Under the pieces are notes generated by a model. That model made no database searches and was not told the origin of the DNA. It worked only from the letters and a program-made list of their open reading frames with translations. DNA of 64,000 nucleotides from assembly GCA_009103225.1 (NCBI GenBank), contig RHPI01003511.1:1-64000 (forward strand), given 5' to 3'. Below are positions 2,979 to 62,278 of the stretch, one piece after another (position 1 is the first letter of the stretch; every line of letters starts with the position of its first letter). The stretch is from Chlorokybus atmophyticus (Eukaryota; Plantae; Mesostigma and Chlorokybus algae). The translations under genes and the position numbers were made by a program.

Positions 2979-4380
2979 GGCGCGGGAAATACACGACGCT
3001 CGATGCCATTCGGGTCGATGAGCTGCAGACCTTCCTAACTCGCCCGCTTCACATCCCCTAACACTACATTCAAAGCGTCATAAAAAATCTCACGTTTTCG
3101 AATAGAGAACGATTCCTTGCCCTGCGCCCAGGTGGGATGCCCGACCACTGCGTGAACCACCGGCAGAAGCGCTATCATAACAACCCCCATGTTGCTAGCA
3201 TACATGTCCCAACTGTAGTTGGCAAGCGATGCCATTAGAGGGTAGCCAGAGCGCTTGCCCGCGCTGTTCAGCGTGGTCTTATCACTGTACAGAATGGCAG
3301 GCGCCAAGTAGGACGCTTCCCCCACCTCTCTCCTCAAATCCACCTCCACATCCTTCCACCAATCGCCCGTGGAAGGATGGCCAAAGCTGTGCTCGTCACC
3401 AGTGTACTAGAGATTGAAGCCATTGGCGGCATGTGGATTGCCGTGCAATCGCGCGAGCCATACCTGCTCCAACTTAGAGCATTACTTACTATGCTGGCCT
3501 CAGAATAGATACTGCATCGATACTGCAATAGGTACTGCATTTCACAGACCTTGGCCGGCATATATGTGACGAGATGGCCCGATCCTCAGGGTCTCCAGGC
3601 TTGCGCAGGTCAGCCGTCACGTAGTTCTGATACGGCAGCACACTCGCATGTGCATATGTGACATGGCTCTGATGGTTGAAGCACATGCACCGCACACCGT
3701 GAACACACCTCAGACTGAGANAAAATTGAGAGAAAGCAATCGTGGTCCGGAGGTAGCTGGCCACATGCACACCGGTCTCCCACTGGAGCTCTTCCGTCAG
3801 GAAGTGTGCATTTCGGATGCACTTGATGATCCGCCCCATGTCGGAGGCCAACAGGCCTTGGCCGTTGTTGCAATGCAGGAATGCCACTGCAAGAGCATGC
3901 TCCGAGCCATACCACCTGGACTCCGACGCGTGCGAAGGGACGCCTCCACTTCCATGTTGGCGTGCCACAGGTTTCTCAGGCACACGCACACATCGAAAGC
4001 CCTCGTTCACTTCCTCCTCCTCCTGTTGCTGATGTGCGTGTGTCTCCTGGAGGAATCTTTCAGCATCAAGCATGTGAGCATCCTGGATCGAACTCCCCGG
4101 TTCAACAAAACCCGCATTGTACTATAATGGACGCTGGCCGACATACAGCTTAATCTGCTTGCACACCCTGCTGCTAATAATATGCATGTAGACCGAGCTG
4201 CGTGTGGCAAAGCGCGTGTGGCAATACGGACAAAAGACTCCCATATCTCACTACTAACGTCGACACAGGTGTCGCCAATGTAACATGCATTATATCCAGC
4301 AACACGCACACCCGCCGCCGCCGCCGCCACCGCCACCGCCACCGCTACCCTTGTATGCCAGAGGCGGAAAACTTGGCCGC
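2979..4380 (-). pseudogene. Plavaka transposase pseudogene (PF18759-like), spliced, truncated by telomere
   Basis: Spliced translation gives HPSTGDWWKDVE...APAILYSDKTTLNSAGKRSGYPLMASLAN...IALLP...RKREIFYDALNVVL...KRAS*EGLQLIDPNGIERRVFP, matching Plavaka motifs (TGDWW, ILYSDKT, YP..GN, G..RR.FP). In-frame TAG stops (FNL*YTG; 3035-3037) and a frameshift near 3560. The start position is approximate. Confidence 0.8.
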
Positions 4381-4751: not shown

Positions 4752-5611
4752 ATGAATTCCATGTTCGCACAGGGCGGGCAGGGTGCCGGAGGGGTGTCCT
4801 CGGTGTCAAACCCCACAAAGACTACCAAGGGCACATCCAATGACAACAGTGACTCGGGCGATATCTTACAGGGCTCCCCCTCCGAGTGGGCAAAGGCACA
4901 CCACAATACTGCCTCTAAGAAAATCCGACCCACCAGCAGCTGCGACCACGGCGACATGATTGAAGGGACCAAACAAGACTGGCATAACCAAGGTGGGTTA
5001 CGATGCACTGTCAATGCCACATGCTAGGGTTCTTTTATCTTGCACATGCACAGCCTCAAGTATCTTGCACTTGACATACATTGTCAATACCACATGCACA
5101 CCCTCATGCACAATTTCCAGTGTCATGCACATGAACAGCATGACCAATCTCGCAAATGCGCAGCCTATTTCTAATTGCGGGAGCTCACAAGTCGCAAAAC
5201 AGAAGCTGCGGAGTACCACGAACAGGTAATCCATGACCTAGTTTAATGTTTCCAGCGGTAATTAAGTAGTATGCTTGCAGATTGCCATGTTGGTCAGAGT
5301 GAACCGAGAGCAGCGCGGCAGGCTGACTGTCTGCCTGGCGGAGTGCAACAAAGCGGAAGACGAGGTAAGCGTGTGTATGCTGATGGGCTAGTCCTTTGGC
5401 AGCACGCCACTCTTACAGTATTACCAAATGCAGGTGGTCACTCTCAAAGCGACCATTAAGCGCATGCGCGTGCACGGCGAGGCGCTGACATTCAAGCTGA
5501 ACAACGGACGAAGTAGCCGCTGTACTGTCAGCGAGCGAGGCAGTGGATGAAGATGACTCCGGCGTTGAAGCAGAAGACTCGTCGGAGGAGGAACAGGAGG
5601 AGGGGGTTTGA
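4752..5611 (+). pseudogene. Accessory gene of the transposon, disrupted copy
   Basis: Same exon structure as 165-608, but with TAC>TAA at 5172-5174 and a 4-nt insertion near 5500 (aagctgaacaacggacg vs aagctgaaggacg). The first exon ends at ...DWHNQ G|gtgggt. Confidence 0.65.
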
Positions 5612-6159
5612 GGAGGAGTTCTGAGGCAGGCACCACGGGTTGACAAGCTGCGCATGAGTCCGACAGCTAGACTCAATGTTATAGGGTAGTTTCATGCGCA
5701 AGTCGGCTGCTGCTCAATTGCAAGTGGACATACTCTCACCACTGCCCGTAAATTGTATATATTGTGGGCTTTTAGGTGCAAGACCAAACAATCAGTCCAA
5801 GGTTTGTACAAGCTGCATGGCATGTTAGTGTTGGCTTACGGCAAGAATTGCCAACTTTTGTCAAACGGCAAGGGTCACATATTAACAGCAGTGTACCGGC
5901 AAAGAAACTGCCGGCTATTGCTGTCAGCTGTCCGTAACTACCGGCTAACGGCCGTCTGTGCACATCGACCAAAGGGTAACTGGTTGACAACTCTCGGCCG
6001 GTTAGTGCCACTGACAACCACTTTCGGCCCGCGGCCGTCTGCGTCAGTCCACTTAAGCCAACGGCAAACCCAACAGTCTAAAAGTAATATTTCAGGCAGG
6101 CTCAGGCAGGCTCAGGCACCAGTCAGTCCCTCAGTCCTTAGTCAGTCACCGTGTAAAAT

Positions 6160-22784: not shown

Positions 22785-23036
22785 NNNNNNNNNNNNNNNN
22801 NNNNNNNNNNNNNNNNNNNNNNNNNNNNNNNNNNNNNNNNNNNNNNNNNNNNNNNNNNNNNNNNNNNNNNNNNNNNNNNNNNNNNNNNNNNNNNNNNNNN
22901 NNNNNNNNNNNNNNNNNNNNNNNNNNNNNNNNNNNNNNNNNNNNNNNNNNNNNNNNNNNNNNNNNNNNNNNNNNNNNNNNNNNNNNNNNNNNNNNNNNNN
23001 NNNNNNNNNNNNNNNNNNNNNNNNNNNNNNNNNNNN
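22785..23036. other. Assembly gap flanked by poly-C
   Basis: Run of N between C homopolymers. Confidence 0.99.
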
Positions 23037-27207: not shown

Positions 27208-27369
27208 NNNNNNNNNNNNNNNNNNNNNNNNNNNNNNNNNNNNNNNNNNNNNNNNNNNNNNNNNNNNNNNNNNNNNNNNNNNNNNNNNNNNNNNNNNNNN
27301 NNNNNNNNNNNNNNNNNNNNNNNNNNNNNNNNNNNNNNNNNNNNNNNNNNNNNNNNNNNNNNNNNNNNN
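27208..27369. other. Assembly gap flanked by (GA)n and poly-G
   Basis: Run of N. Confidence 0.99.
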
Positions 27370-28086
27370 GGGGGGGGGGGGGGGGGGGGCTCCCGAGTTT
27401 TAAGTGCGATAACATCCGTTTGTTCTTGACAGCTTCTTTGGACAAGTGCTTGTACCAAGCACATACATACCTCATAGAGCGTTTCATGGGCCTGCGTTGC
27501 TTATAGGAAAAGCGCATTTTGCATGCCAGCGCTTTCCGTAGCAGTGTCATGTGCCTACATTTTCCAAGCGGGGCCGGCATGCAATACGAAGACTTGCACA
27601 TGACTCAATTGCTGTATATATGTGGAGCAGTGGAGCGTATCGTGCGGAGCGATGCAGAAAGCATGGTTACTTGACAAGTTGAAGGTACTTTCGTATCGTA
27701 TGTAGAAGTTGGGGTTGTAACTTGTTGGGCTATCGTAGCATGCATGGCTCAAATGCGTTACATTATATTGCAATTGCTATGGTTTCCAAATCGTGCAGCT
27801 CATATGATGCATGCATATATGAGCTGATTGCGTATTGCCTTCAAGACTTCAGTTGCAAATAACTTGTGACAAGTAATTCTGTTTGCTGACGACATGTTGG
27901 TAGCTTGAATAACGTTATTGTGTATAATATAAAAATTGAAAGTTATAATAATGAGCGATCATATAAATAATGGTTAAATTTATGCATATCACTTTTGTAT
28001 ACTTAATATCGAAAAAGTGTCAGCTATTATACATCGATGTATGATCATAATATGCTGAATTAATGTAACGTAAGCCATACCCGAAT

Positions 28087-28612
28087 TGTAACGGGAGCAA
28101 TAATAATAGGGGTATTATTGCTACCTAAATAACACATTTTGTATGAATAAGTATTCAAATATGCTTATTTATACCTCTTTTCTACGGTTCCTCGCTTATT
28201 AAAGGCTATGATGCTTTATCATAGCTTAAATAAGTCCCAATGGGTGTAGAACCGCTTATTCAAGCCTATTTAGTGTCACATTTGATATAATGTGATCACT
28301 ATCTCGTTAGGTACCTTACGATAGGTATCTTTGGATAGGTACCTTATCGATAGGTACCTTATCTGAGCTGTGATTGGCTCACGCTAGATTTCCTAACTAC
28401 CCTATCTGTAGGGTCGATGTCTAGTTGTGAGTTAATTATCGAGAGGCATATAGTTGATATACTCTTGATATAAAAGGTCACATCAATCTGATGTGGGGAC
28501 TTTCAGTTCTCTGCTCAGTGGCGGCCACGCCGTTGAAAGGCTTGTCATAGGCGGTGTGGGTGTTGGGGTAGAGGATTGAAGGGGCATCACCGGCGACGGT
28601 GGTGCTGTTACA
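28087..28612 (+). repeat. 5' LTR (526 bp)
   Basis: Starts TGTAACGGG and ends GTTACA. By eye it differs from the 3' LTR at one position (ggctatg vs ggctacg). TATA-like gatataaaagg is present. Confidence 0.97.
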
Positions 28613-28613
28613 T

Positions 28614-28626
28614 TGGTATCCAGGAG
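28614..28626 (+). other. Primer-binding site, Met-i-like with two extra bases (TGGTATCCAGGAGC)
   Basis: Immediately after the 5' LTR; the canonical plant Met-i PBS is TGGTATCAGAGC. Confidence 0.7.
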
Positions 28627-29549
28627 CTGGGGGGTGACGTGGGCACTTATAGGGGGCGGCGACCTGCTTTCGGCCAATCAGAAGCGTCGGCGGCGGCCTC
28701 CTATTCGTCCACGCAGCCCAAGCTTCAAATTCGCTTCCCTGCGCTACCTCCACGTTGAAGCCACCTATCAAAGAGGCGGCCTCTCCACGTGTGAGGTACC
28801 ATCACACGTCGGTGACTTGCCTGCTTGCCTGCTTGTCAGCTGCTTGCCAGGTGCTTGCCAAGTGCACGTGTGTACTTTCATGCACATCACACAGTGGCTT
28901 GCCAGTGCACTATCATTGCTTGCAGTGATTGCATGTCATTGCATGCGGTGATTGCGGCTTGCTAGTGTGTTATCACTGTTTGTCACACTTAGTGCACTGT
29001 CATTGCTTGCAGTGATTGCCTATCATTGCATGCGGTGATTGCTTGTCATTGTGCTTGCCAGTGCATGTCACAGTTAGTCACCGTGCGGCTTGCCTGTTGC
29101 ATGCCTGTGGCTTGCCTGTTGCATGCCTGTGACGTACCTGTGACCTGCCAGCGGCTTTGCCGGGTCGTTTGACCCGGGTCGGTAAGTTCCAAACCAAACT
29201 GTTCCCAAACCCTCCCCCTCTGGCTTCGGCCTGGAGATTGGGACTTGGTTAGGACAGTTGTGGGGAGGTTCTAGGACAATCTGTTCCCAAACCCTGTTAG
29301 TCTGAAACCCTCCCCCTCTGGCTTCGGCCTGGAGATTGGGACTTGGTTGAGGACAACACAGGGTTAGGACATTCTGGTCCCACTCAGACTTGTTCTGTTT
29401 GGTGACACTCCAGATCCAACCTTTCCTATTTTGGGACTGGTTTGGACTCTGTTTGGGACTTTTACAACTTGGGGTCATTTTGACCCTCTCGTTGAACCTG
29501 GTCCATTGGTGAGATTCTCACCATCCCATTCTGCCTATTTTGCAGGCAA

Positions 29550-30725
29550 ATGGAAGAAAACTCGGTGCCCACCTCAAAAGGGGAGAGCTCGGAAAAAGAG
29601 CAACCTTCCCGTGAGGAGGAATTTTCATCCATGGAAGATATTCCGAATCCGGATGATGCACCTGATGAGTCTCAAGCTGCTAAAGCTGCGGAAGCTTCAG
29701 TGGATGATAGATCACCTTCTATATTCCCTGAGTTTTCTATTCGCATGACACAGCAGGACTTGATGGAGCATTTCCTTAGTACCTATGATCAGGACCCTCG
29801 TGAGGCAATTGTCTCATTCATGAACTTTCTCTTCCTTTTGGCAGAAAAAGTTTCAAAGCTCACCACCTTTATGGGGCGAGATTGGGAGGGGCAGATGGGT
29901 GAAGGCAAACGTGTTCTGAATATGATCGAGCGTCTTCAGCGTGCTGACGGTGGTCCACCTGTTCAAGCACTTGCTCGTCCTGCCGAGTTTGTTCCCAACA
30001 AGCAAGCGGCCATCTTCGACTGGCTTGTGAAGTTGCGACACTATGTCAACTCCCTTCACATTTCTGAGGAGGGGAAATTGCGTGTAGCTGAGTTGCTGAT
30101 CCCAAACGATGCTTTGGCAGAGTGGTACCGCCGTAAGCAACGGGATACCAACCTCGGGCGGGAAGTAAATCAGTTGTGCTTTTTCATGGAGCAGCGCTAT
30201 GGTGGCGCAGATCCTGCCCAGGTTGCTCGCAACCAGCTGCACAACCTGCGTCAGAACGGGCGTCCGGTTCAGCAGTATATCCAGGATTTTCAGTCGTTTG
30301 TCAGCAAGATCAATGCTGGCAAACTACCTATCAGTGATGCTGATCAGCTGGATATGTTCAGGCGTGGCTTGGACACAGATCTCGTGCAGCATGTGGCCGT
30401 CAACCCCGCGAGTTTGCAAGAGTGGGCCTCGACGGATTTACCAATGCTGATGCAGATGGTTGCTGCTGTGGACAGTGTAAAACGCTCTCACGCCAACATG
30501 CAAACCACGGCAAAAGAGGCAGCCCCGGTTTCAGCTGCAAAGCGCCCGGCCACTGGCAACAAACCTTTTGTGAAAAAGGCGAAACCATCTCATCCTGCTG
30601 GCGCCTACAATGCGGCCAAATCCATCATCACTTGCAGTTTCTGCAAGAAGACAGGTCATGGGGAGGCTACGTGCTATGCAAAACAGAATGCACAGAAGGC
30701 CAAGCAGCAGAGAGAAAAGAAATAG
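29550..30725 (+). CDS. gag: Retrotransposon Gag
   Basis: 391-aa ORF with retrotransposon-gag core (QVARNQLHNLRQNGRPVQQYIQDF...FRRGL) and CCHC knuckle CSFCKKTGHGEATC. Ends at TAG 30723-30725. Confidence 0.93.
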   Translation: MEENSVPTSKGESSEKEQPSREEEFSSMEDIPNPDDAPDESQAAKAAEASVDDRSPSIFPEFSIRMTQQDLMEHFLSTYDQDPREAIVSFMNFLFLLAEKVSKLTTFMGRDWEGQMGEGKRVLNMIERLQRADGGPPVQALARPAEFVPNKQAAIFDWLVKLRHYVNSLHISEEGKLRVAELLIPNDALAEWYRRKQRDTNLGREVNQLCFFMEQRYGGADPAQVARNQLHNLRQNGRPVQQYIQDFQSFVSKINAGKLPISDADQLDMFRRGLDTDLVQHVAVNPASLQEWASTDLPMLMQMVAAVDSVKRSHANMQTTAKEAAPVSAAKRPATGNKPFVKKAKPSHPAGAYNAAKSIITCSFCKKTGHGEATCYAKQNAQKAKQQREKK

Positions 30726-33700
30726 GAATTGTCCGTGGTTGGTAGCTTAGTCGAGCAGAACGACTTTAAAAACTCTGTACTTCTTGATAAAGTTTCCTCT
30801 CTTTGTGATGTATCAGATGTATGGACTGATATGAGCACGCCACATGTGTTGAGAAATGCAAACGGTTGTGTTTTAATCAATGTTCCATTCTCTGAATTAG
30901 TAACTGCTGTTACGCACTTACACAAGTTGCAATTACAACATGCTGTCACTGCATGTGTAGTTATCCCTCGATATCATGGCCCGTGGTCACGATTGTTGAA
31001 AGGGGGAGAAGTAATCATGCAACTCTCACGCAAAGATACAGGAGCTTCACCATTGCAAGTGATCTTGATCAAGTCTGCTACCAATCACGGCACTCCGACA
31101 TTAGCTACATTTGATGGTCACTCAGTGCCACTCAAATGGAGATTTGAGAGTCAACTTATGAATACACCATGTACAGCATTGATTGATACTGGTGCAAACC
31201 ATAACTTTGTTGAACATGCTTGGGTGAAACGTAATAACATTCCTTTCACACCAGTCACGTCGTATGTACGTGCTGCTGGTTCCACTCTCAATGCAATGGG
31301 AGAGGTAAAAGGACGTTTTGTTATTAATGGCCATAAAACCCGACCAGCCTTCATCGTGGTGGATATTAGTATCCCCGGGGTGGATGTTGTTTTAGGGGAA
31401 CAATGGCACACTAAAGCAGGTTTACAATTACACTCTCGAGCCAATACGTGCACCCTTCGTAAAGGGAAACGTACGATGACTTTAACAGCATATGTACTCG
31501 CACGTATACCACGCGATAATGTTCCGCTCCTCTCTGCTATGCAATTGAAACGTTGCATGCGTAAACGTGAGGAAGTATACTTACTGCACTTACAACAGGT
31601 GGAAACACCTGCTGAACAGGCTATCAGTGACCCTGTGGTGCAGTCACTTACGGAACAATACGCAGATGTATTTCAGGATGAACTCCTAGAGTTGCCTCCC
31701 GATCGAAACATACATCATACCATTCCGTTAGAAAAGGGGGCAAAGCCACCTTGGCGGCCTATATACAGGCTAAGTCCCTTAGAACACGCGGACATGGAAA
31801 AACAGCTCAAAGAGTTATTGGACAAAGGTTTAATAACAAAGAGCATATCTCCTTTTGGTGCACCAATTTTGTTCGTGCCCAAAAAGAATGGCAAGCTACG
31901 CATGTGTATTGATTACCGTGCGTTGAACAAGGTCACTGTGAAAAACAGATACCCTTTGCCTCGGATTGATGATTTGTTTGATAAGCTGTCAGGTGCAACA
32001 GTGTTCAGCACGCTGGATTTGACCAGTGGTTATCATCAAATCAAAATCCACCCGTCGGATATACAAAAAACTGCATTTCGCACCCCACTAGGACACTTTG
32101 AGTATAAAGTGTTACCATTTGGGTTAACAAATGCACCGGCTACATTTCAGACAGCAATGAACGCGGTATTTGCTGATGAATTGTACAAGTTTGTACTGGT
32201 ATATCTAGACGACATTATTGTGTTCAGCAAAACCCGGGAGGACCACCACAAACATGTGGAATTGGTTCTAGCTAAATTACGCGAACACAAATTCTATGCC
32301 AACCTGTCCAAATGCAACTTTGCAAAGGATGAACTACCCTTTTTAGGGCATGTGATTGGCAAAGAAGGATTGAAACCAGATCCTCAAAAGGTGTGTGCGG
32401 TAAAGGCTTGGCCACCACCCAAGGATGTACATCAGTTACGTACTTTCTTGGGGCTAGCCAATTATTTCCGCAAGTTCATGCGAGCATATTCTGGCATGGC
32501 AAACCCTTTAACATCTTTACTAAAAAAAGATGTTAAATTTGTGTGGACGGAGGCACACGAGGTTGCTTTTACACGCATCAAAGATGCATTAACACAAGCC
32601 CCTGTGTTAGCCTTCCCCGACCACACCAAGCCTTTTGTGGTGATCAGTGATGCTTCCATCATTGGGTGTGGGGCAGTCCTTCTACAAGATGACAGACCAT
32701 GTGCATATGAAAGCAGAAAGTTCATTCCTGCTGAACGTAATTACACAACCACTGAGCAGGAATTGCTCGGGGTGGTGCACGCGCTGCGCACATGGCGTTG
32801 CTACTTGGAAGGGGTGGAGTTTTCAGTGATTACTGATCACAACCCGCTCACATTCTTTCATACGCAACAAAATCTGTCGAGGCGGCAAGCTAGGTGGAAT
32901 GAATTCATTTCTCGTTTCACTTTCACTTGGCAATACCGTCCGGGTCGCACCAATGTGGCGGATCCACTAAGTCGCAGCCCTGCTCTTTTGGCACTTACGC
33001 GCTCTCGAAGTACGCGTAATGTACAACAGCCTGAAGATCCTTTCTTAAAGGAAGTGTCCGCAGGTTATAACTCAGATGTTTGGTTTAGCAGCCAAACCAA
33101 CTTGCAACAGCTTACTGCTGTTAGCAATCTGTGGTATAAAGGGGAGCAGTTGGCAATTCCCAACTCGGGCGACTTACGTAAGCAATGCTTACATTCAGTG
33201 CATGACCCGCCGTATGCTGGGCATTTGGGGAAACACAAAACACTCAAATCTGCGCAACAGTTATACTGGTGGCCGTCAATGTCAGCTGACGTGGATCAAT
33301 ATGTTCGCACATGTGACGTGTGTCAACGTAATAAGCCACTACGACAAAAACAAGCGGGATTGCTTAAACCATTGGCAATTCCAGAACAAAAGTGGGATAG
33401 TGTCAGTATGGATTTGATTACTGACCTACCTGAAACAGCAGCTAAATACACTGCTATTGTGGTTTTTGTCGACCGTTTGACTAAAATGGTGCATTTTGCC
33501 CCGTGTTGCACAACTGTAAGTGCACGGGACTTGGCACACTTATTTGTGTCCACGGTCTTTCGCGTTCACGGTATACCGCGTGAACTTGTCACAGATCGTG
33601 ATCCTCGTTTTGTCTCCAAGTTTTGGCGAGAAGTCTGTGAATTGTTGGGGGTAAAACAAAGCATGTCGACTGCTTTCCACCCGCAAACGGACGGTCAAAC

Positions 33701-34457
33701 TGAGCGAGCAAATCAAATACTGGAAGAGATGCTTCGCCACTATGTGGCTCCTAATCATGCTGATTGGGACAGGTACTTGCCAATGGCAGAGTTCGCTGTG
33801 AACAACGCGTGGCAAGAAAGTGTAAAGGAAACCCCATTTTTCTTGAATTATGGGATTCGCCCAAACACACCAGCGTCATTGCGTGTACCTCGCCCTGCCG
33901 TGTTTGTACCAGCGGCAAAGGAATTTGCCACTAATATGCAAGAAAATTTGGCTCGAGCCAAGCTGTGTCTGTCAGAAGCACAGGACAGGCAAAAAGCTTA
34001 TGCTGATACACATCGAAAAATGGCCACTTTCGATGTCGGCGATAAAGTTTTGCTTAATGCAAAAAACATAACCATCAAAGGTACGGGTGCTCGCAAGTTG
34101 CTGCCCCGATGGTTAGGTCCTTTCTCTATCATTGATAGAGTTGGTACGCACGCTTATCGACTGCAATTGCCCCCAAGTGTGCGTATACACAACGTGTTCC
34201 ATGTGAACTTGTTGAAACCTTACCGCTCAGACGGTAGAACACAGCCTCCACCACCGCCAGTTGAGGTGGACAGCGAGCTCGAATATGAGGTGGAAGCTAT
34301 ATTAAACCATAAGCTAAATAGTCGTGGACGCGCAACTCGCTATCTGGTGAAATGGAAAGGGTATGGCCCGGAACATAACAGTTGGGAGCCCGATAGGCAT
34401 CTTACGCACTGCCGCGAGTTGCTTCGAGCTTATTGGGATTCAAGTCCTGTCTCATAA
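30726..34457 (+). CDS. pol: Retrotransposon Pol: extra N-terminal module, protease, RT, RNase H, integrase, chromodomain
   Basis: Same frame as gag with no ATG at the start. LIDTGA (PR), YLDD (RT), SDAS (RH), H-H-C-C and DDE (IN), GPF motif, EYEVEAILNH...YLVKWKGYGPEHNSWEP (chromodomain). No internal stops over 1243 codons. Confidence 0.96.
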   Translation, partial: ELSVVGSLVEQNDFKNSVLLDKVSSLCDVSDVWTDMSTPHVLRNANGCVLINVPFSELVTAVTHLHKLQLQHAVTACVVIPRYHGPWSRLLKGGEVIMQLSRKDTGASPLQVILIKSATNHGTPTLATFDGHSVPLKWRFESQLMNTPCTALIDTGANHNFVEHAWVKRNNIPFTPVTSYVRAAGSTLNAMGEVKGRFVINGHKTRPAFIVVDISIPGVDVVLGEQWHTKAGLQLHSRANTCTLRKGKRTMTLTAYVLARIPRDNVPLLSAMQLKRCMRKREEVYLLHLQQVETPAEQAISDPVVQSLTEQYADVFQDELLELPPDRNIHHTIPLEKGAKPPWRPIYRLSPLEHADMEKQLKELLDKGLITKSISPFGAPILFVPKKNGKLRMCIDYRALNKVTVKNRYPLPRIDDLFDKLSGATVFSTLDLTSGYHQIKIHPSDIQKTAFRTPLGHFEYKVLPFGLTNAPATFQTAMNAVFADELYKFVLVYLDDIIVFSKTREDHHKHVELVLAKLREHKFYANLSKCNFAKDELPFLGHVIGKEGLKPDPQKVCAVKAWPPPKDVHQLRTFLGLANYFRKFMRAYSGMANPLTSLLKKDVKFVWTEAHEVAFTRIKDALTQAPVLAFPDHTKPFVVISDASIIGCGAVLLQDDRPCAYESRKFIPAERNYTTTEQELLGVVHALRTWRCYLEGVEFSVITDHNPLTFFHTQQNLSRRQARWNEFISRFTFTWQYRPGRTNVADPLSRSPALLALTRSRSTRNVQQPEDPFLKEVSAGYNSDVWFSSQTNLQQLTAVSNLWYKGEQLAIPNSGDLRKQCLHSVHDPPYAGHLGKHKTLKSAQQLYWWPSMSADVDQYVRTCDVCQRNKPLRQKQAGLLKPLAIPEQKWDSVSMDLITDLPETAAKYTAIVVFVDRLTKMVHFAPCCTTVSARDLAHLFVSTVFRVHGIPRELVTDRDPRFVSKFWREVCELLGVKQSMSTAFHPQTDGQTERANQILEEMLRHYVAPNHADWDRYLPMAEFAVNNAWQESVKETPFFLNYGIRPNTPASLRVPRPAVFVPAAKEFATNMQENLARAKLCLSEAQDRQKAYADTHRKMATFDVGDKVLLNAKNITIKGTGARKLLPRWLGPFSIIDRVGTHAYRLQLPPSVRIHNVFHVNLLKPYRSDGRTQPPPPPVEVDSELEYEVEAILNHKLNSRGRATRYLVKWKGYGPEHNSWEPDRHLTHCRELLRAYWDSSPVS

Positions 34458-34592
34458 ACTGTGGGCTTGGTTTTATGACAGACTGGCAGTGCAGTTTCAT
34501 TACCACCCTGTCATTTCCTGCTATCTCACTGGTTACAATTACTCGAAATCAAGCCTGATCAACTTGAGTTTAACGAGGACGTTGAAAACCTA

Positions 34593-34604
34593 AGTGGGGG
34601 GGAA
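34593..34604 (+). other. Polypurine tract
   Basis: Purine-rich agtgggggggaa directly before the 3' LTR. Confidence 0.85.
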
Positions 34605-35130
34605 TGTAACGGGAGCAATAATAATAGGGGTATTATTGCTACCTAAATAACACATTTTGTATGAATAAGTATTCAAATATGCTTATTTATACCTCTTTTC
34701 TACGGTTCCTCGCTTATTAAAGGCTACGATGCTTTATCATAGCTTAAATAAGTCCCAATGGGTGTAGAACCGCTTATTCAAGCCTATTTAGTGTCACATT
34801 TGATATAATGTGATCACTATCTCGTTAGGTACCTTACGATAGGTATCTTTGGATAGGTACCTTATCGATAGGTACCTTATCTGAGCTGTGATTGGCTCAC
34901 GCTAGATTTCCTAACTACCCTATCTGTAGGGTCGATGTCTAGTTGTGAGTTAATTATCGAGAGGCATATAGTTGATATACTCTTGATATAAAAGGTCACA
35001 TCAATCTGATGTGGGGACTTTCAGTTCTCTGCTCAGTGGCGGCCACGCCGTTGAAAGGCTTGTCATAGGCGGTGTGGGTGTTGGGGTAGAGGATTGAAGG
35101 GGCATCACCGGCGACGGTGGTGCTGTTACA
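34605..35130 (+). repeat. 3' LTR (526 bp)
   Basis: Near-identical to the 5' LTR and followed by the TSD CGAAT. Confidence 0.97.
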
Positions 35131-36274
35131 CGAATACGCCGATTGTAATAACTCGTCATGTGCATTACTTTTTGCATACATCACATGTGTGGGATGGACA
35201 TCAACAGGTGGAATGAACATAGTGGGAATGTTATTTATCTTGCATAAAAACATATATATATACACATATATATGTATACATATCATATTCTTTAATTGCC
35301 GTCATTTGTTAAATGCGACATGCAACACATTACGTACTTCTTAGTAACCGTCAACAATAAATAAATAAAAATGCTTGCCGTGTGTGATTGGATTTCTGCA
35401 TCTGATATGATTTATCTGACATATAGACTTATACATTTGTGTGTATACCTTAATATTTATTTATTAAACCACATTTACATTGCTTTTATCGCAGCAACGG
35501 TAATAATAGGTTATGGTATGTCATAATGCAATATTTAATACATCGATGTTTAATGACATTAATCGATCATAGTGTTAACCAATATATATATCACAACGTA
35601 CTTGAATTAAAAATATGCATCAATCTTAAGGTATTGATAAAAAATATGATATTATGATATTAACTCCTTATGCTATACTTTTGGTCAAGCCCTTGATCGT
35701 GATGTTGTAATAGTATCATAACGAACCGGCAACAATTAACATAACAAGATGGATCAATCTGACGTATAATGTATAAAAAGTTACTGATGTGTACAAATAC
35801 TATTATACTAACTACATGCCCATGACAAGAATATATCATCAACTAAACATGACAGTTACACTCGTTGCAGACAATGGTTGTTTACCAGATGAAGCATGTG
35901 AATGTCTCATCTTCCCAATTTGCCGGTATGCCTCAAGTGACGAGCCTTGAGACTTGGAGGCATACATGAATGCTCTCTCTCCGAGCATGGCACGGCCTTT
36001 GCGACCGAAAATAGCGCTGTCAGACACAACCCCCAGTTGGTCGCCAACGCCCTGACACTAACGTTAGCGGTCCCGAGCCAAACAACTGCCCTGCATCACG
36101 TAATATTAGTTATATCGCAGCAGCCAAAATAGGCGTGCGACACACATACACACAGTGGTCAACTGTGTGTGAGTTTGTGCTTCGGCGTCAATCTTGCTGT
36201 TGTGGGCGGCGGCGGCAGCGGTGGCAGGGTTGAGCGGTGAGACACACACGCAAGCAACTCTCCTTCAGTCCACC

Positions 36275-43888: not shown

Positions 43889-46800
43889 ATGGCGGTGGAT
43901 GCGTACGACGACGATGCAGGCGCTATGCTGCCGCCACCGCCTCGGCGCGGTGGCGGTGCTGGGGGTGGGAGCGCCAGGCCGTTGTCGAACGATGATTTCC
44001 GCCGCATGGTCATGGATACCCCCAGGAGGGGCGAAGGAGAGAAGAAGACACAACAGCAGAAGAAGTCAAGGTATTAAGTTTTTGGTCATTCCTTGTTCCG
44101 CATGTGCACCTGCAGCCCTGTGTCATTCCGCTATGTCGAAGAGAATGCAATACGCCTATCCGTTGCGTCCGGTTGTTTCTGTGTGCACTATATGTTGCTA
44201 CGAAGTCGTGGGCGACACAGCGCACACTGGAAGTGTGCACAGCAAATCGCAGTTACCAATTTGCAGCTGGCTGGTGATAATGCGAGTGCATACAAGCGTG
44301 TGCTAGTTACCTGCATGCGCAGTGTGTTATGTGCGCAGTCTCAGATTCTACTGTAGCTGTAGATTGCTCTCAAAAAAGAAAGGTCGCAAATCAGCGTAGC
44401 TTTGAGGTCAAGCTTTGTGGTCGTGTTCAGTCGGCCAATATCATATACACAGGGCTAATTAACTTCAACGAGTGCGAGGAGCACTTGGGTGAGCATTAGC
44501 CAAGTGCTTATTCTTCAATCATGCAGCCAACAGCAGCCATCAGCAGCGTGTCCTGGTCATTGAGGAGTAGTGTTGTGTGCTAATAGCAGACGCATGCTGA
44601 ATGAAATGCAAACCCAAAGAAATGACCAACGTGTGGTGCAGTGGACAGAAGAAGGATGACGAAGATGGCCCAAAGAAACCGAAGTGGAAGAAGCCAAAGC
44701 CAAAGCCTGGCACAGAGGAGTAAGAGCTTGTGCTGGTTGGCATTGGTCAGAGTTGTATTTTCCTGCTCTTGTGATGGACCTTGAAACCATCTTTGGTACG
44801 CGCAGGGACGAGGAGAATCCTTTGTCGTCCAGTTACAGAGATCGGGCTAAAGAGCGTCGCGAAGAAAAGAATCCTGACTATGTCGGCATGGATTTGGAGA
44901 TTAATACCTTCAGCGCTGTCGCCCCACCAACTGACTACATTGAGTAAGAGCGGTTGTGCATGCTACATGTGTCAGCTTGCATGCGCCTTCCGTGTTGCTC
45001 AGTGCTTAAGCCAGTAATATGCTGTGCAGCCCTGCGCAAGTGCAGAAAATGTCCATCGAGAATAGCAAGTACCTTGGAGGTACGCCAACAGCTGACCGGT
45101 AGTGTTGCGTGTTGCGTGGTCAGCAGTTTTAGTACATCGAACTGCAGGTGATCTTGAGCACACTCATTTGGTGAAGGGGCTGGATTTCGCTCTGCTACAG
45201 AAGATCCGCAGTGAGATGCATAAGGAAGAAGCGGAGGGTGTATCCAGAGAGTGAGTCTGCATGGCAGGTTTTGCTTACGGACTGACTGCAACTGCAACCT
45301 GAAGTAACATAGATGCATGCTGCGGGTGGGATTGCAACTTGTCAAAACATTCTTTTGTGCATATCTATTTGCGCTTGTGTTAATGAGTTGACCTTGTTGT
45401 GCAGAGTCAAAGAAGACAAAGTCACACCAGATCAGCCTGTGCGGTTCCAGACAGCCATGGGCAAGGTTGTCTGTTTGTGGTTGCTGTCCAGTTGGCAACG
45501 GCCTCTGCCATGGAAGTGGCTAGGCAGCAACTTAGAGTTAGTTCTTGGCAGGTTGTGTGGCAGCACCTGTTGGCCCCGCCAAAGACCCGGCCTGTCAACG
45601 AGATGTTTCTGCCAGGAAGGACAGCTTACGTCTTTGATATGGTTAGCGCTATTGGATAGTGCAGATTGGTCTTCTCACTTGCTGTGCATGGTAGCGGTTC
45701 GTGTGAGATTCTGCTGTGCTTTCTGGCTCACATGAAGCGACACTCATGCAGGAGGAAGATGCTGGTCACGATATTCCTACCACAGTGCATCGCAGCAAGA
45801 CAGATTGCCCTGCTCCTGAGGTGCAAGCGTCGTACATAACCCGCTGAACATAGAGCATGTGATTGCATGTTGACTTGGGTGGTGCTGCAGGATAGGATTA
45901 CAGCTGGCATTGATGCAGCCGTGTTAGATAGACTGGCCAAGATCATGAGCTACCTGCGCATGGGAAGCGGAAAGGGAAAGAAGCTGCGCAAGAAGGAGAA
46001 GGCCATCAATGGCGTTGCTAGCCAGAGTGATGTCGTGCGCGCAAATCTCCAATCCCTAGCGTCCTCTTCAAAGGCAGAAGCAAGCATTGGAGGTGCTGGT
46101 GCGCCTCCTCTTCCTCCTCCTCCACCTCCTCCTCAGGCAAGCCGACATTCAGTTGGCTGTAGTGTGCTGGTTGAGGGACGTGCCGTGAATGTTGCCCTGA
46201 CAAGCGTAACAACAGGTGGAGGGTAATATATTTGACGATGCCCCAAGTGAGTACGTGTGTGAGCTGCCAGAGCCTCCACCTCCGCCACCAGACTTGCCGC
46301 CCCCACCGCCTCCGCCATTTGACTGCATGCCTCCACCGCCACCCCTACCCCCGCCCCTCCCGCGCGACCTGGGTGAAGCATTGCCACCCCCACCTCCCCC
46401 GCTGCCTGTGCCCCCCCCACCGCCACCACCTGATGCCAATGCTGAGGTCAGTTGGTCTGCTGTGGAACGTGCAAATGCAACATGCATCTCCCTGGTTGGG
46501 ACTGTTGTGAGCCTGCATGGTCTTTTGCATCACACCGACTCATGATGCAGGCCTACGTGGATGAACCCATGCCAGGGCCAACCATGCCAACGCAGTTCGA
46601 GTGGCAGCAAGCACATCAACCGGATTGGCAGCAAGGCTGGGATCATGCACAGTTCGAGGCGCATTATGCGCAACAGTACGCCGAGTATCAGCAACCCGAA
46701 GCCATGGGTGACGACCAGTCCACATATGAAGCGACCAGGGCAGCATCACTAGCGTATCAAGCTGCGCAGGATCCTGCATACAAAGCCTACCTTATTGAGC

Positions 46801-47360
46801 ATGGCCTGCTCCCAGGAGGTCCCGGACAGGTTGCTGCAGAGTTGCAGGGACCCATGACGCAGGCCGAGAAAGATCGCGGGCTGGGGTCTGTGTTCAAGAG
46901 GGACGATGAGCGGTTGCAGGCGATGCGAGAGAAGGACTCCCGCGAGAAGGACCCCAACTTCATATCAGAAAGCTACTCAGAGTGCTATCCTGGCTACCAA
47001 GAGTATGCCACAGAGGTGATTGAAGGCAGCGATGATGAAGAGGACCTCACGAAGATGGACATGGGCAACAAGTTGAAGGGTCGGGTGCACAGATGGGACT
47101 TTGAAACGGAGAAGGAGTGGAATGAGTACAATGAAACCAAGGAAGCCATGCCCAAGGCTGCCTTTCAGTTTGGGGTGAAAATGGCCGATGGCAGAAAAAC
47201 CAAGAAGAACAGCAAAGATCAAAAGTTGAACAACCAGATGAACAGGATCAATCAGCTCATAAAGGCCAAAGGCAAGGACCGCGGTGACAGTGGCGGTGGT
47301 TTTGGTTTAGAAGAAATAGGGGGAGACGGGAAAGAACAGCGCAAGAGGTTGAAAGTTTGA
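43889..47360 (+). CDS. SMU2: RED/IK-family spliceosomal protein (SMU2)
   Basis: LSNDDFRRMVMDTPR, YRDRAKERREEKNPDY, SKYLGGDLEHTHLVKGLDFALLQKIR, FLPGRTAYVFD, ISESYSECYPG, WDFETEKEWNEYNETKEAMPKAAFQFGVKMADGRKT. Confidence 0.96.
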
Positions 47361-49958: not shown

Positions 49959-50511
<553 letters not shown>

Positions 50512-50524
50512 ATGTGGATAAAGT

Positions 50525-50707
50525 ATACAATAACCATCCCGCGGACCTACACACCTTCACATTGTGAGCATGGTTTGCATAGATGCGAGTGCTTCAATGC
50601 AAATTGTCGTTGTTGATACAATAACCATCCCGTGGACCTACACACCTTCACACTGCGAGCATGGTTTGCATAGATGCGAGTGCTTCAATGCAAATCGTCG
50701 TTGTTGA
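50525..50707 (+). repeat. Two-copy tandem duplication with a 91-bp period
   Basis: atacaataaccatccc...tgtcgttgttga repeated at 50525 and 50616. Confidence 0.85.
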
Positions 50708-52127
50708 TAAGAGACGCTGGGAGTGCGAGTGTGCTGTTTTGCAGTATCTCTTGTGATGCTTCTATTTGCCAATTGCTTCTTGTGCATGATGACGTACAAC
50801 CATTGTTGCGATCCATACAAACTTCTTACATTGGAAGCTTAAGGTCGTGGGTTCATTTCCGTTGGGGGATGGAAACACAGCCGTTTTCTTAGCAGAATTA
50901 AAGGGATAATGAACGAGACATTTGGGCGACTTGCCGTGGGCTGGGCGTGGGTTCGCAACCCGCGCCTGCTGATGTGCGCTACAGCCGCGTGAGCGACCGC
51001 GCTGCAATGGCAGGTCGTGTCGTATGACACGTTAAGGGTGGCCGGTGCTAGCTCAGGCAATGGTTGTTCCGATTGTGACAGGTTGCACGCCAAAAGTTTG
51101 CGGGCAGATCGATTGTAACACGATGCACGATGACGCAAGCTAATGTGAGAGCCTGAGGGAAAGGGAACTTGGCGGGTTAAATTGGGAAGGAATGTAACGA
51201 ATTTGTGTAATCGTAATAGTCGTCACTCTTGATGGCGCCATTCGCTATCATAGCCCCCTTTCTTGCAAACACTACATGAAAGATATGAAGAAATGTACAG
51301 CAGCTTTAAGGCATCATGCAAAAACGGGTGGCAAGATCGAACAAGGCAGTAAAGTTGAAACCACAATTGAAAGCACATCTTGCTTCTGGTTTTTGCAAGT
51401 TTGCAAAACACTTATATGGGTCAAAGCATTCAATATTATTGCATCATAAAAGTAAGTTGATAAATGTCACATCGCATGTGCGGTTAACCAGATGCCATGT
51501 TTTTAATCGTTGGCTCGGTGCGTGAAAGATCCCAAACTATGCTTATTGGTATTGTGATCTTTTAACATGGTAAGCTTTCCACCCTTAAATGCTAGCAACC
51601 AATACCTCACTAGGCCACAGTCAGCACTGCTGACATGTCCGTCATATAAAAAGGCACACAGAAGCGCGTACAAATGCATGCACGTACATGTACACATGCA
51701 CCAGCACATGTACGCGCACGCATATACACAAACGGACGACAAACGAGTTCTTAAATAAGTAATGCTTGCTCATAAGTTGCCAATGACGCAAGCTTACAGT
51801 GGCACCATTGATAGCTAATTCACCACCGCGCTTTACTATTGTCTCTTTTGGTATATGTACAATAATAAGAGGCAGCTGCAAGCGGTTGTGACGCAAACGC
51901 TGCGAACCAAGACTTGCTCAGCTTTTACATTGATTGCATTATAAAAGCCATATCATACATAAGTTGACACCACAACAATTGAGAGCCGTTGTTGAGGGTG
52001 CGCATGGCGTTCACAAAGAGTGGATCCCTTACGCATCCCAATACTGAGTCACAATTTGTGCTAACGTAGATGATTGCTGGCCAAATATATGCGTTGCCGT
52101 GTCATATGTGTACAAGGGGGGGGGGGG

Positions 52128-52451
52128 NNNNNNNNNNNNNNNNNNNNNNNNNNNNNNNNNNNNNNNNNNNNNNNNNNNNNNNNNNNNNNNNNNNNNNNNN
52201 NNNNNNNNNNNNNNNNNNNNNNNNNNNNNNNNNNNNNNNNNNNNNNNNNNNNNNNNNNNNNNNNNNNNNNNNNNNNNNNNNNNNNNNNNNNNNNNNNNNN
52301 NNNNNNNNNNNNNNNNNNNNNNNNNNNNNNNNNNNNNNNNNNNNNNNNNNNNNNNNNNNNNNNNNNNNNNNNNNNNNNNNNNNNNNNNNNNNNNNNNNNN
52401 NNNNNNNNNNNNNNNNNNNNNNNNNNNNNNNNNNNNNNNNNNNNNNNNNNN
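52128..52451. other. Assembly gap flanked by poly-G and (GA)n
   Basis: Run of N. Confidence 0.99.
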
Positions 52452-55910: not shown

Positions 55911-58900
55911 TTACAAAACTGTATTCACATGCAACGCCTTGAGCAACGCCAACGCCATCTGCTTGACCATGACCATCTCACCCTCACGCTGCACAAGGCT
56001 GCGCAGGTTGGCGGCCAGATTCTGCTCAACCATCAGCTGCTTGGGTCGGGGGTGCTGCTCATAAACAACCTTGCATATCTTGAGCAATGACACACGCGCA
56101 ATGTTGTCACCGTCGCGAGCTGATTGCCTCAACTTCTCCACCAGCAACGGAGCCAGTCCACCAGTTGTGGACAGCGCCACATTGATGCGCGTTGATTTGG
56201 TCACAATCTTCAAGAACGGGTCCAATATATGCACAAAGGCAGTGCCTTCTGCGGACCCAAACACAGCAACAAGCCGCGCAACAGCATCCGGTTGCGCAAG
56301 GCGGGGTTCAACACGTCGCTGGTCGGCTGCCAGCCACACAGCCATGGCGTCCATTGCCACAACCTGCCAGTGTTCTTCCTGCAGCAGGTCCAGGAACAGG
56401 TCCAGTCCTCCATGCACCCAGAGTTCCGAACGTGTTGCGGGAGAGGCGTGTGCCATGTCGCACAAGAGGGGGAGAGCCAACCGTCGCATAGCTGCTTGAC
56501 TGCCACCCACACCCACGCCAGCAACGATGGGCCGCAGGTGGCGGACGAGGCCTGCGGCTGCAGCAGCTTCTTGCCGCTCCCGGCTAATCTTGCAAAGGTT
56601 GTAGACGGCGCGCAAAGCAGCCCCGCGAACTGTTGCCGTGGCCACCCCGGCGTGCATCTCCAGCAACGGAACAAGCCGGTGCATGGCCCCAGCTTCCTGA
56701 ACAGCTTCAACAGCGGCCGGGTCTGTTGTAAGCTGCGCAATGCACCCAACCACACGCACGAGCACCGGTAACTCCAACGCCGGCAACAGTGAAAACAGTC
56801 GCCCTAGCAGTGCCGGCTCGCATACTGCTCGCTTGACCGCAGAGTCCCCACCCGCAAATGCAGTCAGAAGCATAGCACACCGCCTTGCAACATCTGCCGC
56901 CGCGGCAGCGCTGGCTGCAGCAGCAGATGTGGCGCTGCCACTGCTGCGCGCGCGGTAGTGGCTGCCATACTGTCCTGCACCACCAGGGCTGCTGACCCCA
57001 TTCCTACTCGACCCCGGACTTGCAGTGTAGTAGGATGATGCTGGTGCAACAGGTGGATGGAGCCGCTCGTCATTGGCAGCTTCAAGGATGCCAATGAGGC
57101 TGCTGAGGGCACCCGCGCGAGCAAGAAGGCGTAAATGGTCATTGACTGGTGTTGGGCCTGTGAGCCGCAGCACCCTCTCCAGCACGCCAACCGCCAGTGC
57201 AACAGCTTCACGGTGCTCCCGATAATCAACATTTAGCAGAACTGCCAGTGCTCGCAGGCCCCCACAAGCTATGACTACCTGCAAAGCACCGGCAGATGCA
57301 CAGGTACACCTCGCCAGGAAGCGGGCAGCTTGCAGCCGGCATGCACTGCCGCTGCTAGTGTCCGATGTTCGTGCAAGCACTGCTGGCACCAAGCCACTCA
57401 TGCACGCACGCTCCGGCAGTGGCGCCCCTTCCTCACCCAGCGCTGCATTGATTAACTGCAGTGCCGCAGTTGCCATTGCTTGCGATGATGCTGGGTCCAG
57501 CAGTTCTGCAAGCACAACGGGCACCTGCGACTCCAGCAGTCGTGCCCTCAACCGAGGGTCCCTCTGCACCATGGCGCTGAGGGCTGCAAGCACAGCAGTA
57601 CACTAGAGTTGGGTTCTGTTTTCGCTCAGCAGCATAAAAAGAAAGAGTTTGTATGCGCGCTACATACCAGAACATGCGGCTTGGACCGCTGCCTCTTTGG
57701 TTAATTTGCCATTGCGCACGCTGAGCTTGCCCATCAACCTGCCTACATCCTGCAATGATTCTGCGAGGGTGTCCTCTCCATCCCCTTCATCCCGTGCTCT
57801 CGCCCATTCCTGCTCCACACCATTGTTGACATCAACACTCGAACAACAACATGTAAAAGAGAGCGACTGAAGCGCATGCAAGACACACCTGTTCACCATC
57901 CGTGAACTCTCCAACAACTTCCGTGCCCGGGAGCGATTGTGTGGTGGTTGTGGTGGAACTCTTCGCCAGCTCGCGCTCATCTGCAGCCGACAACTCCGTG
58001 CCTGGGCTGGAACGTTCCACACCCTTGCTAGCGCCATCTGGTGCACACGCGAGGTCGGCAATCAGCGTCTCCAATGTGCGGTTGGTAGCAGCTGCCTCAG
58101 CGAATGTGTCATCGCTGCGGCTGTGTGCACCCGCCACACTGGAGCCTGCATCGCTGCGGTCGTCGACTGTCGTTTCGCCATAATCATGCCGCGTTAGATG
58201 CATGGACACCTGAGTGTGCGGCGCATAGGCAATCAGCACAAACAGTGACATGTTGAGTTGAAAGCCCAACTGGTGCAACACCGGCAACCAGTGTAGTGAG
58301 ATGAACTGCAACTCCTTTCATCAAAAGCAACCAAGAAGCCTTACTTGGCCAGATCGTGTACGCGGCATGAGTGGTGATGGTGAAGGTGGCTGGCTTCTAG
58401 CTGAAAGTCGTCCCATCCTGCCCTCACTGCCACCTCGTTCATGATATATGTAAGGTGACAACGGGCCCACGCCATCATCCAACTGCACCACAAGTAGCAA
58501 AAGATACAGATTGAGGCAACAACAGTCTGGTTGGCTCGAGATTGTATACCATGCAGTACTCACAGGTGACGGTGGGCGTAGCGGGCGTGTTCCGGATGAG
58601 CGATTAAGAGTGCGTGAGTGAGTGGGTGGTTGTGCTCGTGCTCCTCGTTTGACCTCAACTATTCGAAACTCCCCGAGGGCGACGGGTGAGGGAGAGAGTG
58701 CACCTGGGCTGGGAAGAGGGCTGCCGCCTGTGTGATAAGGGGACGGCGAGGCAGAACGCGGTGGCAGTGTGGCAGACGTGGGCACCTCCTCCATAGCACG
58801 GTCCACAACATTGGCAACATCGGCGCTGAGAACCGCAGCAGCATGGCCTCGAGCAAGTGCACGAAGGTGGCCTTGCACCCACGGATGCGCGAGCAACTCG

Positions 58901-59691
58901 GAAGCGGCAGGTCGGGCACGTGCGTCTTTGCGTAGACACTTCTCCAGGAAATCACGTAGTGAAGGTGAAACTGACTTGGGTGGTGCCGATGGAGCGAGTG
59001 CAGGCGGTGCGCCTCGCGTGCTTTTTCCTGTCAACAGCTCCAGCACCGCCAATCCAAGAGCGCGCACGTCCTCGCGTGCTGAAGCAGGAGCAGCAGTTGT
59101 GTCATTGGCAGCATGAAGAACACCAGCCAGGCCCCAGTCCGCAAGCTTCACAAGGCCGTCCTTAGTGGTGAGCAGGTTGGTAGCGCGCAGGGCGCCGTGT
59201 GCAACACCCTGAGCATGCAAGTACGCCAAACCCTCAAGTGCCTGAGAGACGTAGGCGGCGGTAAGGGACTCTGGAAGAGGTCCAAAGCGGCCTCCTGTGG
59301 CAGTGATGGCAGCGAGGGAGCCGTTGTCACAAAGTTCAGCAGCGACATAAATGTGCGAGCGTGTCCGGGCAAAGCCGAGGTAGCGAGCAACGTTGCGGTG
59401 GTTGAGAGCACGCAGGGCCTCGACCTCCAGCTGGACAGCTATGGCCGCCGCCTCCCCGCCGCCGCTGGGCAGAGCGGGGAGATCAATCTGGCGAAGGGCC
59501 GCATGTTCCCTAGCCACGACATCCCAGCACTTGAACACCCGACCTACGACACCCCCACCGCTCCCGGACGGCGACGCTGACGACGATCCGCCTGCGCCAC
59601 CTCCGCCGCCGCCGCCGCCTGCTGCAGCCCCAGCATAGGCCGGTAATGGCTCAGCAGCCTGCCAGCGCTCCCCCACGGCGGACCCGACCAT
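55911..59691 (-). CDS. MAP3K-epsilon (Cdc7/Cdc15-like) protein with degenerate kinase domain and C-terminal armadillo repeats: probable pseudokinase
   Basis: Kinase-like LPESLTAAYVSQALEGLAYLHAQGVAHGALRATNLLTTKDGLVKLADWG...DFLEKCLRKDARARPAASELLAHPWV. C-terminus YEQHPRPKQLMVEQNL...VMVKQMALALLKALHVNTVL matches plant MAP3K-epsilon. Long exons are open; the middle exons were not fully resolved. Confidence 0.9.
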
Positions 59692-61900: not shown

Positions 61901-62278
61901 NNNNNNNNNNNNNNNNNNNNNNNNNNNNNNNNNNNNNNNNNNNNNNNNNNNNNNNNNNNNNNNNNNNNNNNNNNNNNNNNNNNNNNNNNNNNNNNNNNNN
62001 NNNNNNNNNNNNNNNNNNNNNNNNNNNNNNNNNNNNNNNNNNNNNNNNNNNNNNNNNNNNNNNNNNNNNNNNNNNNNNNNNNNNNNNNNNNNNNNNNNNN
62101 NNNNNNNNNNNNNNNNNNNNNNNNNNNNNNNNNNNNNNNNNNNNNNNNNNNNNNNNNNNNNNNNNNNNNNNNNNNNNNNNNNNNNNNNNNNNNNNNNNNN
62201 NNNNNNNNNNNNNNNNNNNNNNNNNNNNNNNNNNNNNNNNNNNNNNNNNNNNNNNNNNNNNNNNNNNNNNNNNNNNNN
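61901..62278. other. Assembly gap
   Basis: Run of N. Confidence 0.99.

Follow-up and report, generated by a model that had tools for sequence, protein, structure and literature searches.

What is the segment of some 140 residues that a chromovirus in the genome of the alga Chlorokybus atmophyticus carries between Gag and its protease, and does it still act as the enzyme from which it appears to descend? The question is raised by a complete, chromovirus-type long terminal repeat (LTR) retrotransposon of 7044 bp (positions 28087–35130) in the 64,000-nt stretch of DNA analyzed here, hereafter the window (GenBank assembly GCA_009103225.1, contig RHPI01003511.1, positions 1 to 64,000). The first 140 residues of its pol open reading frame (ORF; 30726–34457, 1243 codons), encoded at 30726–31145 and hereafter called the module, give no direct family match, and an initial annotation, made from the raw sequence, had read them as a degenerate DNA adenine methyltransferase-like segment. 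We found that the module is, as judged by profile comparisons, homologous to the Dam (PF05869) modules of related elements, and we consider it probable that it is a shortened, diverged Dam-type remnant in a young chromovirus, noncatalytic and persisting as a flank of the protease.

RESULTS

Homology to the Dam modules of related elements

Relatives were gathered by a search with the whole Pol sequence, which returned thousands of matches, and the top 120 were examined. The best of these were 45–58% identical to the window Pol; those with a named source came from green algae (Haematococcus lacustris, Closterium, Chromochloris zofingiensis and Astrephomene), and metagenome contigs of 5–8 kb were also frequent. 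Precomputed domain lists contained PF05869 for 12 of the 120, and the window Pol was 43–54% identical to relatives whose pre-protease region matches this family. A fresh Pfam scan found a Dam match upstream of the protease in all six relatives scanned. Specifically, Dam and protease occupied residues 44–118 and 207–320 of P0122, residues 9–78 and 161–266 of P0055, and residues 63–130 and 217–305 of P0037. Three of the six Dam matches exceeded the Pfam gathering score, and only positions ~19–91 of the 169 in the profile were covered.

The window module aligned repeatedly with these regions. BLASTP placed its residues 12–81 on residues 62–124 of P0122, with N-V-P-F (pol residues 52–55; 30879–30890) falling on the N-P-P-F of the relative (E = 0.001 for this single comparison), and phmmer against the 120 relatives gave many weak matches that consistently set window residues 48–105 on the pre-protease region. 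A profile hidden Markov model (HMM) built from the pre-protease segments of 16 relatives with N-P-P-F or N-A-P-F, the window being left out, matched the window segment over residues 48–100 with 20.1 bits (E = 2.1e-8), a score reached by none of 2000 shuffled sequences (best, 7.0 bits). In addition, hhalign against alignment A2, which comprises five motif-bearing modules from fetched contigs and is independent of the HMM alignment, gave a probability of 92.7% (E = 4.3e-7) over window residues 27–101. Together with the HMM and the AlphaFold confidence described below, this alignment delimits the module core (30804–31028) shared with Dam-positive relatives. We conclude that, at the level of sequence, the module is homologous to the Dam modules of the relatives and that its link to Dam is transitive yet statistically firm. 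The degenerate methyltransferase-derived module that the initial annotation had placed between gag and the protease of a chromovirus is thus borne out by the PF05869 matches of the relatives and by the HMM and hhalign homology. The peptides it quoted are present at pol residues 49–67 (30870–30926) and 75–93 (30948–31004), and its count of ~140 residues ahead of the protease agrees with a Pfam protease match that starts at residue 145.

Outside this set of relatives, a word-index protein search limited to pol residues 1–145 found nothing, and an exhaustive phmmer search of 1.84 billion representative proteins gave two matches only, neither of them credible. Both were tandem-repeat proteins with scores summed over 17 and 8 weak stretches and were therefore treated as artifacts. 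Two resemblances inside the module were also considered and set aside. A second Asp-Thr-Gly-Ala (31035–31046, pol residues 104–107), a candidate for a duplicated protease half, lies 50 residues ahead of the true protease active site in a column that is mostly gaps in the relatives; since this column is not conserved, we regard it as a chance occurrence. A weak likeness to the SH3 region of the integrase in many relatives (domain E 0.4–10), seen for residues 78–101 (30957–31028), is probably due to chance.

Decay of the module in the window

We took as strongly conserved those columns in which 13 or more of the 16 motif-bearing modules agree on a residue (n = 32). The window module is aligned at 14 of these columns and has the same residue at 7. 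The catalytic Asn/Asp-Pro-Pro-aromatic loop is absent from it; as the initial annotation had observed, the column aligned on the relatives' N-P-P-F holds N-V-P-F. Between the gag stop and the motif lie 51 residues, versus 97–140 in three relatives, and between the motif and the protease Asp lie 98 residues, versus 113–127 in the three; compared with the relatives, roughly half of what precedes the loop is gone. A shortening of the S-adenosylmethionine-binding part, as claimed from the raw sequence, therefore stands only as a shortening of the module, which affects both sides of the motif and may include the cofactor-binding part. Scored with the motif-bearing profile, the window module ranks 35th among 55 motif-less modules (54 relatives plus the window), i.e., in the more diverged half.

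Motif loss and constraint across relatives

The motif column was surveyed in the 70 relatives whose protease is preceded by 120 residues or more. N-P-P-F was found in 11 of them, so that intact versions, a point raised by the initial annotation, do exist among the relatives, and N-A-P-F in 5, while the other 54 displayed about fifty forms, nearly all of them unique. The hydrophobic Pro-ending strand after the helix was kept in ~50 of the 70. On a rough neighbor-joining tree of the pol core (reverse transcriptase, RNase H and integrase; no support values), intact-motif elements are interspersed with decayed ones at no fewer than five separate positions, and the window element falls among relatives with both intact and decayed motifs. 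Because the intact-motif elements are scattered in this way, the simplest reading is that a Dam domain was ancestrally present at the pre-protease position and would then have decayed repeatedly.

The conservation of the module differed with the state of its motif. Among pairs with 50–60% identity in the pol core, module identity was 0.39 for N-P-P-F pairs, 0.43 for N-A-P-F pairs and 0.21 for decayed pairs, and protease identity in the same bin was 0.25–0.33 whatever the motif state. For the decayed pair P0011/P0019, in which the synonymous rate (dS) is unsaturated, the ratio of nonsynonymous to synonymous rates (dN/dS) was 0.30 in the module (bootstrap, 0.17–0.54) and 0.11 from protease through integrase (0.09–0.15). 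Two further pairs had saturated dS; module dN was ~3 times core dN in one of them, which is decayed, and 1.7 times core dN in the other, which is intact. By these dN/dS values and dN ratios of the relatives, decayed modules are relaxed but not free of constraint.

The gag-pol junction

The gag ORF (29550–30725; 391 residues plus TAG), which shows a Retrotrans_gag domain and a zinc-knuckle-like motif at its C terminus, is closed by a TAG, and pol reads on in frame from there, free of further stops. As read from these frames, the module is translatable only past the gag TAG and sits at the N terminus of Pol. This fits the earlier proposal that it is expressed only when the gag stop is bypassed, and the arrangement is shared by three relatives: on the contigs of P0122, P0037 and P0055, the module comes first after a single in-frame gag stop. 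In P0122 and P0037, as in the window element, this stop is a TAG with a G after it; in P0055 it is a TGA with CTA after it. The relative elements with this junction (L001, L003 and L004/5) bear N-P-P-F or N-A-P-F. A prediction of a stimulatory RNA fold 3′ of the gag TAG gave no signal (z-score, 0.05; pseudoknots are outside the scope of the tool).

The junctions of the relatives could be located at single in-frame stops in L001 (1111–1113), L003 (1621–1623) and L004 (1456–1458). Other arrangements were also seen: pol of L002 lies in a different frame with a short overlap (1841–1911), and gag, module and pol form one ORF in P0090.

Predicted structure of the module

A single-sequence AlphaFold prediction of the module was unusable, with a predicted local distance difference test (pLDDT) of 32.6. 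Alignment A1, which keeps the 140 residues in register via the window's own full Pol, raised the pLDDT to 69.6 (predicted template modeling score, 0.61), with values of 76–87 over residues 41–118. The model shows two short strands leading up to the motif, a helix at residues 55–71 and strands at residues 75–81, 95–100 and 110–115; residues 1–13 and 120–131 are disordered in it.

Anatomy and age of the element

The element, all of whose features lie on the (+) strand, is flanked by the same 5 bases on both sides, forming a target-site duplication (28082–28086 and 35131–35135). The 5′ LTR (28087–28612, 526 bp, with TG...CA ends) was recognized from an identity run with the 3′ LTR (34605–35130) at an offset of 6518, and the two LTRs show a single mismatch over their 526 positions. 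A G-rich polypurine tract (34592–34604), read from the sequence, adjoins the 3′ LTR. Downstream of the module, pol encodes an aspartic protease (residues 145–247; 31158–31466; RVP_2 match) with its active-site Asp at residue 154 and an active-site tetrad kept in 45 of 63 relatives, a reverse transcriptase (residues 384–544; 31875–32357; RVT_1, E = 1.3e-39) and an RNase H (residues 607–731; 32544–32918; RT_RNaseH and RT_RNaseH_2 matches). These are followed by the zinc-binding domain and catalytic core of the integrase (residues 816–986; 33171–33683; Integrase_H2C2 and rve matches), its SH3-like domain (residues 1105–1167; 34038–34226; SH3_Tf2-1 match) and a chromodomain (residues 1187–1238; 34284–34439; Chromo, E = 5.3e-17).

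The LTRs with their target duplication, the order protease, reverse transcriptase, RNase H and integrase, and the C-terminal chromodomain identify a chromovirus. The element is not DIRS1-like: it has an rve integrase with its zinc domain and direct LTRs, and Pfam gave no tyrosine recombinase match. Since gag and pol are open and the LTRs nearly identical, the insertion is a young one. A 14-nt unit is repeated ~4 times within each LTR (28304–28363 and 34822–34881). A tRNA scan made in support of a primer-binding site found no tRNA gene in the window.

Surroundings of the element in the window

Three ORFs with domain matches lie elsewhere in the window, namely one with a RED-like C-terminal domain (46452–47357, + strand), one with armadillo repeats (55914–57593, − strand) and one encoding a protein kinase (58324–59691, − strand), and they indicate that the window is eukaryotic nuclear DNA. 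Assembly gaps appear as runs of N at 22785–23036, 27208–27369, 52128–52451 and 61901–62278, one of which lies 0.7 kb upstream of the 5′ LTR; a single N stands at 1036 and another at 3721.

Some 1 kb inside the window, 324 perfect CCCTAA units (1037–2978) form a telomere repeat of the TTAGGG type, which is known from some Chlamydomonadales clades, diatoms and brown algae (PMC3318450) and so says little about the host. This array is either interstitial or subtelomeric, or it marks a scaffold join. The 1-kb flank at 1–1002 is repeated 5 kb further on (5000–6008; 95–98% identity). A perfect (CT)x275 tract at 49960–50709 is directly followed by two 91-nt tandem units with 95% identity.

DISCUSSION

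Origin and fate of the module

A bioRxiv preprint of May 2026 (10.64898/2026.05.21.726589) describes Ty3/Gypsy LTR elements that carry DAMs derived from those of DIRS elements (DAM-LTRs), among them a chromovirus-like clade of Chlorophyta. The history that we favor for the module in the window, that of a noncatalytic Dam-type remnant, would begin with an ancestor of the green-algal chromovirus group that carried a PF05869-type Dam domain at the same position, and some living relatives retain this domain with its Asn-Pro-Pro-Phe loop. As the first part of pol, the module would be made when ribosomes pass the gag TAG and would thus be present in Gag-Pol alone. In the window element, both of its sides have been shortened, and the Asn-Pro-Pro triplet has been lost along with most family-conserved positions. 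The prediction still gives a strand-loop-helix-strand core surrounding what was the catalytic loop. The module would no longer methylate, and it may persist as a folded, noncatalytic N-terminal flank of the protease in Gag-Pol, acting as a spacer or processing region, possibly with some nucleic-acid contact.

Several results weigh against this history. Residues 1–140 of the window Pol matched no Pfam family at E ≤ 10, PF05869 included, whether scanned by themselves or within the whole Pol, and phmmer against the PDB gave no match for the window module at E ≤ 10 and none for the module of an intact relative either. No close copy of the window's element or of its module was found, including in a metagenome scan. 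Foldseek searches of the A1-based model against the PDB and BFVD returned nothing at E ≤ 0.001, so that neither the PF05869 profile nor the methyltransferase structures to which the initial annotation had looked for confirmation recognized the module directly. The weak Foldseek matches were mostly GNAT acetyltransferases and antizyme, which stood level with or above two viral Dam entries (phage and giant-virus proteins in BFVD named DNA N-6-adenine-methyltransferase, with weak E values of 0.04 and 0.12); two methyltransferases in the PDB appeared at E ~0.1. Furthermore, A1 includes intact modules and drives the modeled fold, which is therefore no proof that the window sequence folds in this way. 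The selection figures come from the relatives and not from the window's element, and the N-A-P-F relatives remain well conserved, so that loss of the first Pro alone is no proof of lost activity. Finally, what the comparisons demonstrate is the homology, position and decay of the module; its role as a spacer or processing region is one that we infer.

It is the conserved N-A-P-F relatives that keep alive the main rival, namely a still-active N6-adenine methyltransferase with a variant loop that would mark the cDNA of the element or its new insertions, in line with a proposal made for DAM-LTRs. The window module keeps the loop Asn and the aromatic residue, the N-A-P-F relatives are as conserved as the N-P-P-F ones and match PF05869 at E ~1e-5, the element looks recently active, and DAM-LTR copies are described in the preprint as higher in N6-methyladenine (6mA) (10.64898/2026.05.21.726589). 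An active enzyme would nevertheless have to work with 25 of the 32 conserved positions lost, with roughly half of the pre-loop stretch missing and with a sequence that PF05869 fails to recognize even at E ≤ 10. Moreover, the preprint reports Asn-Pro-Pro in almost all sampled DAMs and no detected activity in Escherichia coli even for intact eukaryotic DAMs (10.64898/2026.05.21.726589), and we judge activity of the window module to be distinctly unlikely. The repurposing for nucleic-acid binding or cDNA marking that the initial annotation put forward is speculation, and the degree of decay argues against cDNA marking.

The module might instead be a neutral leftover that does nothing by itself, kept open merely because it lies in frame into the protease. 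Such a leftover would account for the faster change of decayed modules (identity of 0.21 versus 0.39–0.43; dN of 3–5 times that of the core versus 1.7 times in the intact pair), for the dozens of different forms in the motif column and for the variable module lengths. It sits poorly with the dN/dS of 0.30 in one decayed pair, whose upper bootstrap bound is 0.54, with the Pro-ending strand after the loop that ~50 of 70 relatives keep, and with a module that most lineages have left undeleted despite many independent motif losses; we therefore find neutrality unlikely. That the likeness to Dam is due to chance and the region an unrelated gag-pol linker would agree with the empty direct searches, the nonspecific fold searches and the weak similarity between the integrase SH3 region and the residues that follow the Pro-ending strand. 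We regard this as highly improbable given two independent profile tests with E values of 1e-7 to 1e-8 and shuffle controls, the many relatives whose pre-protease region aligns with the same stretch of window residues, and the identical position and junction type.

A wider reading builds on the noncatalytic remnant that we favor. Dam may have repeatedly lost catalysis in many green-algal chromovirus lineages while being kept under purifying selection and exapted as a noncatalytic part of Gag-Pol, for example, as a segment that reads or binds nucleic acid or 6mA-marked chromatin or as a regulator of protease activation. We advance this tentatively, as a possibility on the doubtful side; if it is true, the element described here would be one instance of it that was active recently.

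These observations matter in two respects. Domain screens see a minority of the class, as most of the 70 sampled relatives keep a decayed remnant at the gag-protease junction that is invisible to Pfam; this, together with the scatter of intact-motif elements among them, suggests that methyltransferase activity can be dispensed with time and again while the segment is retained. Both points bear on the undercounting of DAM-LTRs and on the evolutionary stability of the proposed 6mA-mimicry strategy. In addition, the reading proposed earlier on the basis of the raw sequence corresponds to a class of elements that was not described until 2026.

Comparison with known systems

Outside retroelements, PCIF1/CAPAM, a cap-specific N6-adenosine methyltransferase, alone was touched when the profile of the five motif-bearing modules was compared with the PDB (6irx and 6irv; E 0.57–0.65, not significant). 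The alignment centers on PCIF1's own Asn-Pro-Pro-Phe loop and the next Pro-ending strand, a likeness that comes from the profile of the relatives and not from the window sequence. With regard to position, betaretroviruses place a dUTPase (in the pro frame) and lentiviruses a transframe region between nucleocapsid and protease, and these extra segments appear solely in the product of readthrough or frameshifting. They provide a positional analogy for a possible noncatalytic role of the window module, with which they have no sequence relation.

Among retrotransposons, the capture of a DNA-modifying domain into the polyprotein is likewise known from Gypsy-DNMT3 and SymbioLINE/DIRS-DNMT (PMC5890265). 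Those domains are cytosine methyltransferases in another position and are reported as intact, whereas the window module is decayed. DIRS1-like retrotransposons share the domain family PF05869 and are, according to the preprint, the presumed donor lineage (10.64898/2026.05.21.726589). They differ from the window element in having a tyrosine recombinase and no DDE integrase, whereas the latter has ordinary LTRs flanked by a target duplication and encodes both an integrase and a chromodomain.

The closest counterparts are the DAM-LTR chromoviruses of the preprint (10.64898/2026.05.21.726589), with which the window element shares its Ty3/Gypsy affiliation, the presence of a chromodomain and, in pol, a Dam-derived domain of the DIRS type. 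Unlike them, the window element has a module that is shorter, fails the Pfam criterion and is without Asn-Pro-Pro. The group is defined there by a domain screen; in the text read, no position of Dam is given for the chromovirus-like clade, and no decayed in-frame relics are described (10.64898/2026.05.21.726589). DAM-carrying chromoviruses are thus already known, and the window's element is a decayed member of that class; because such relics are undescribed in the text read and the screen needs a detectable DAM, we file it as a new decayed member.

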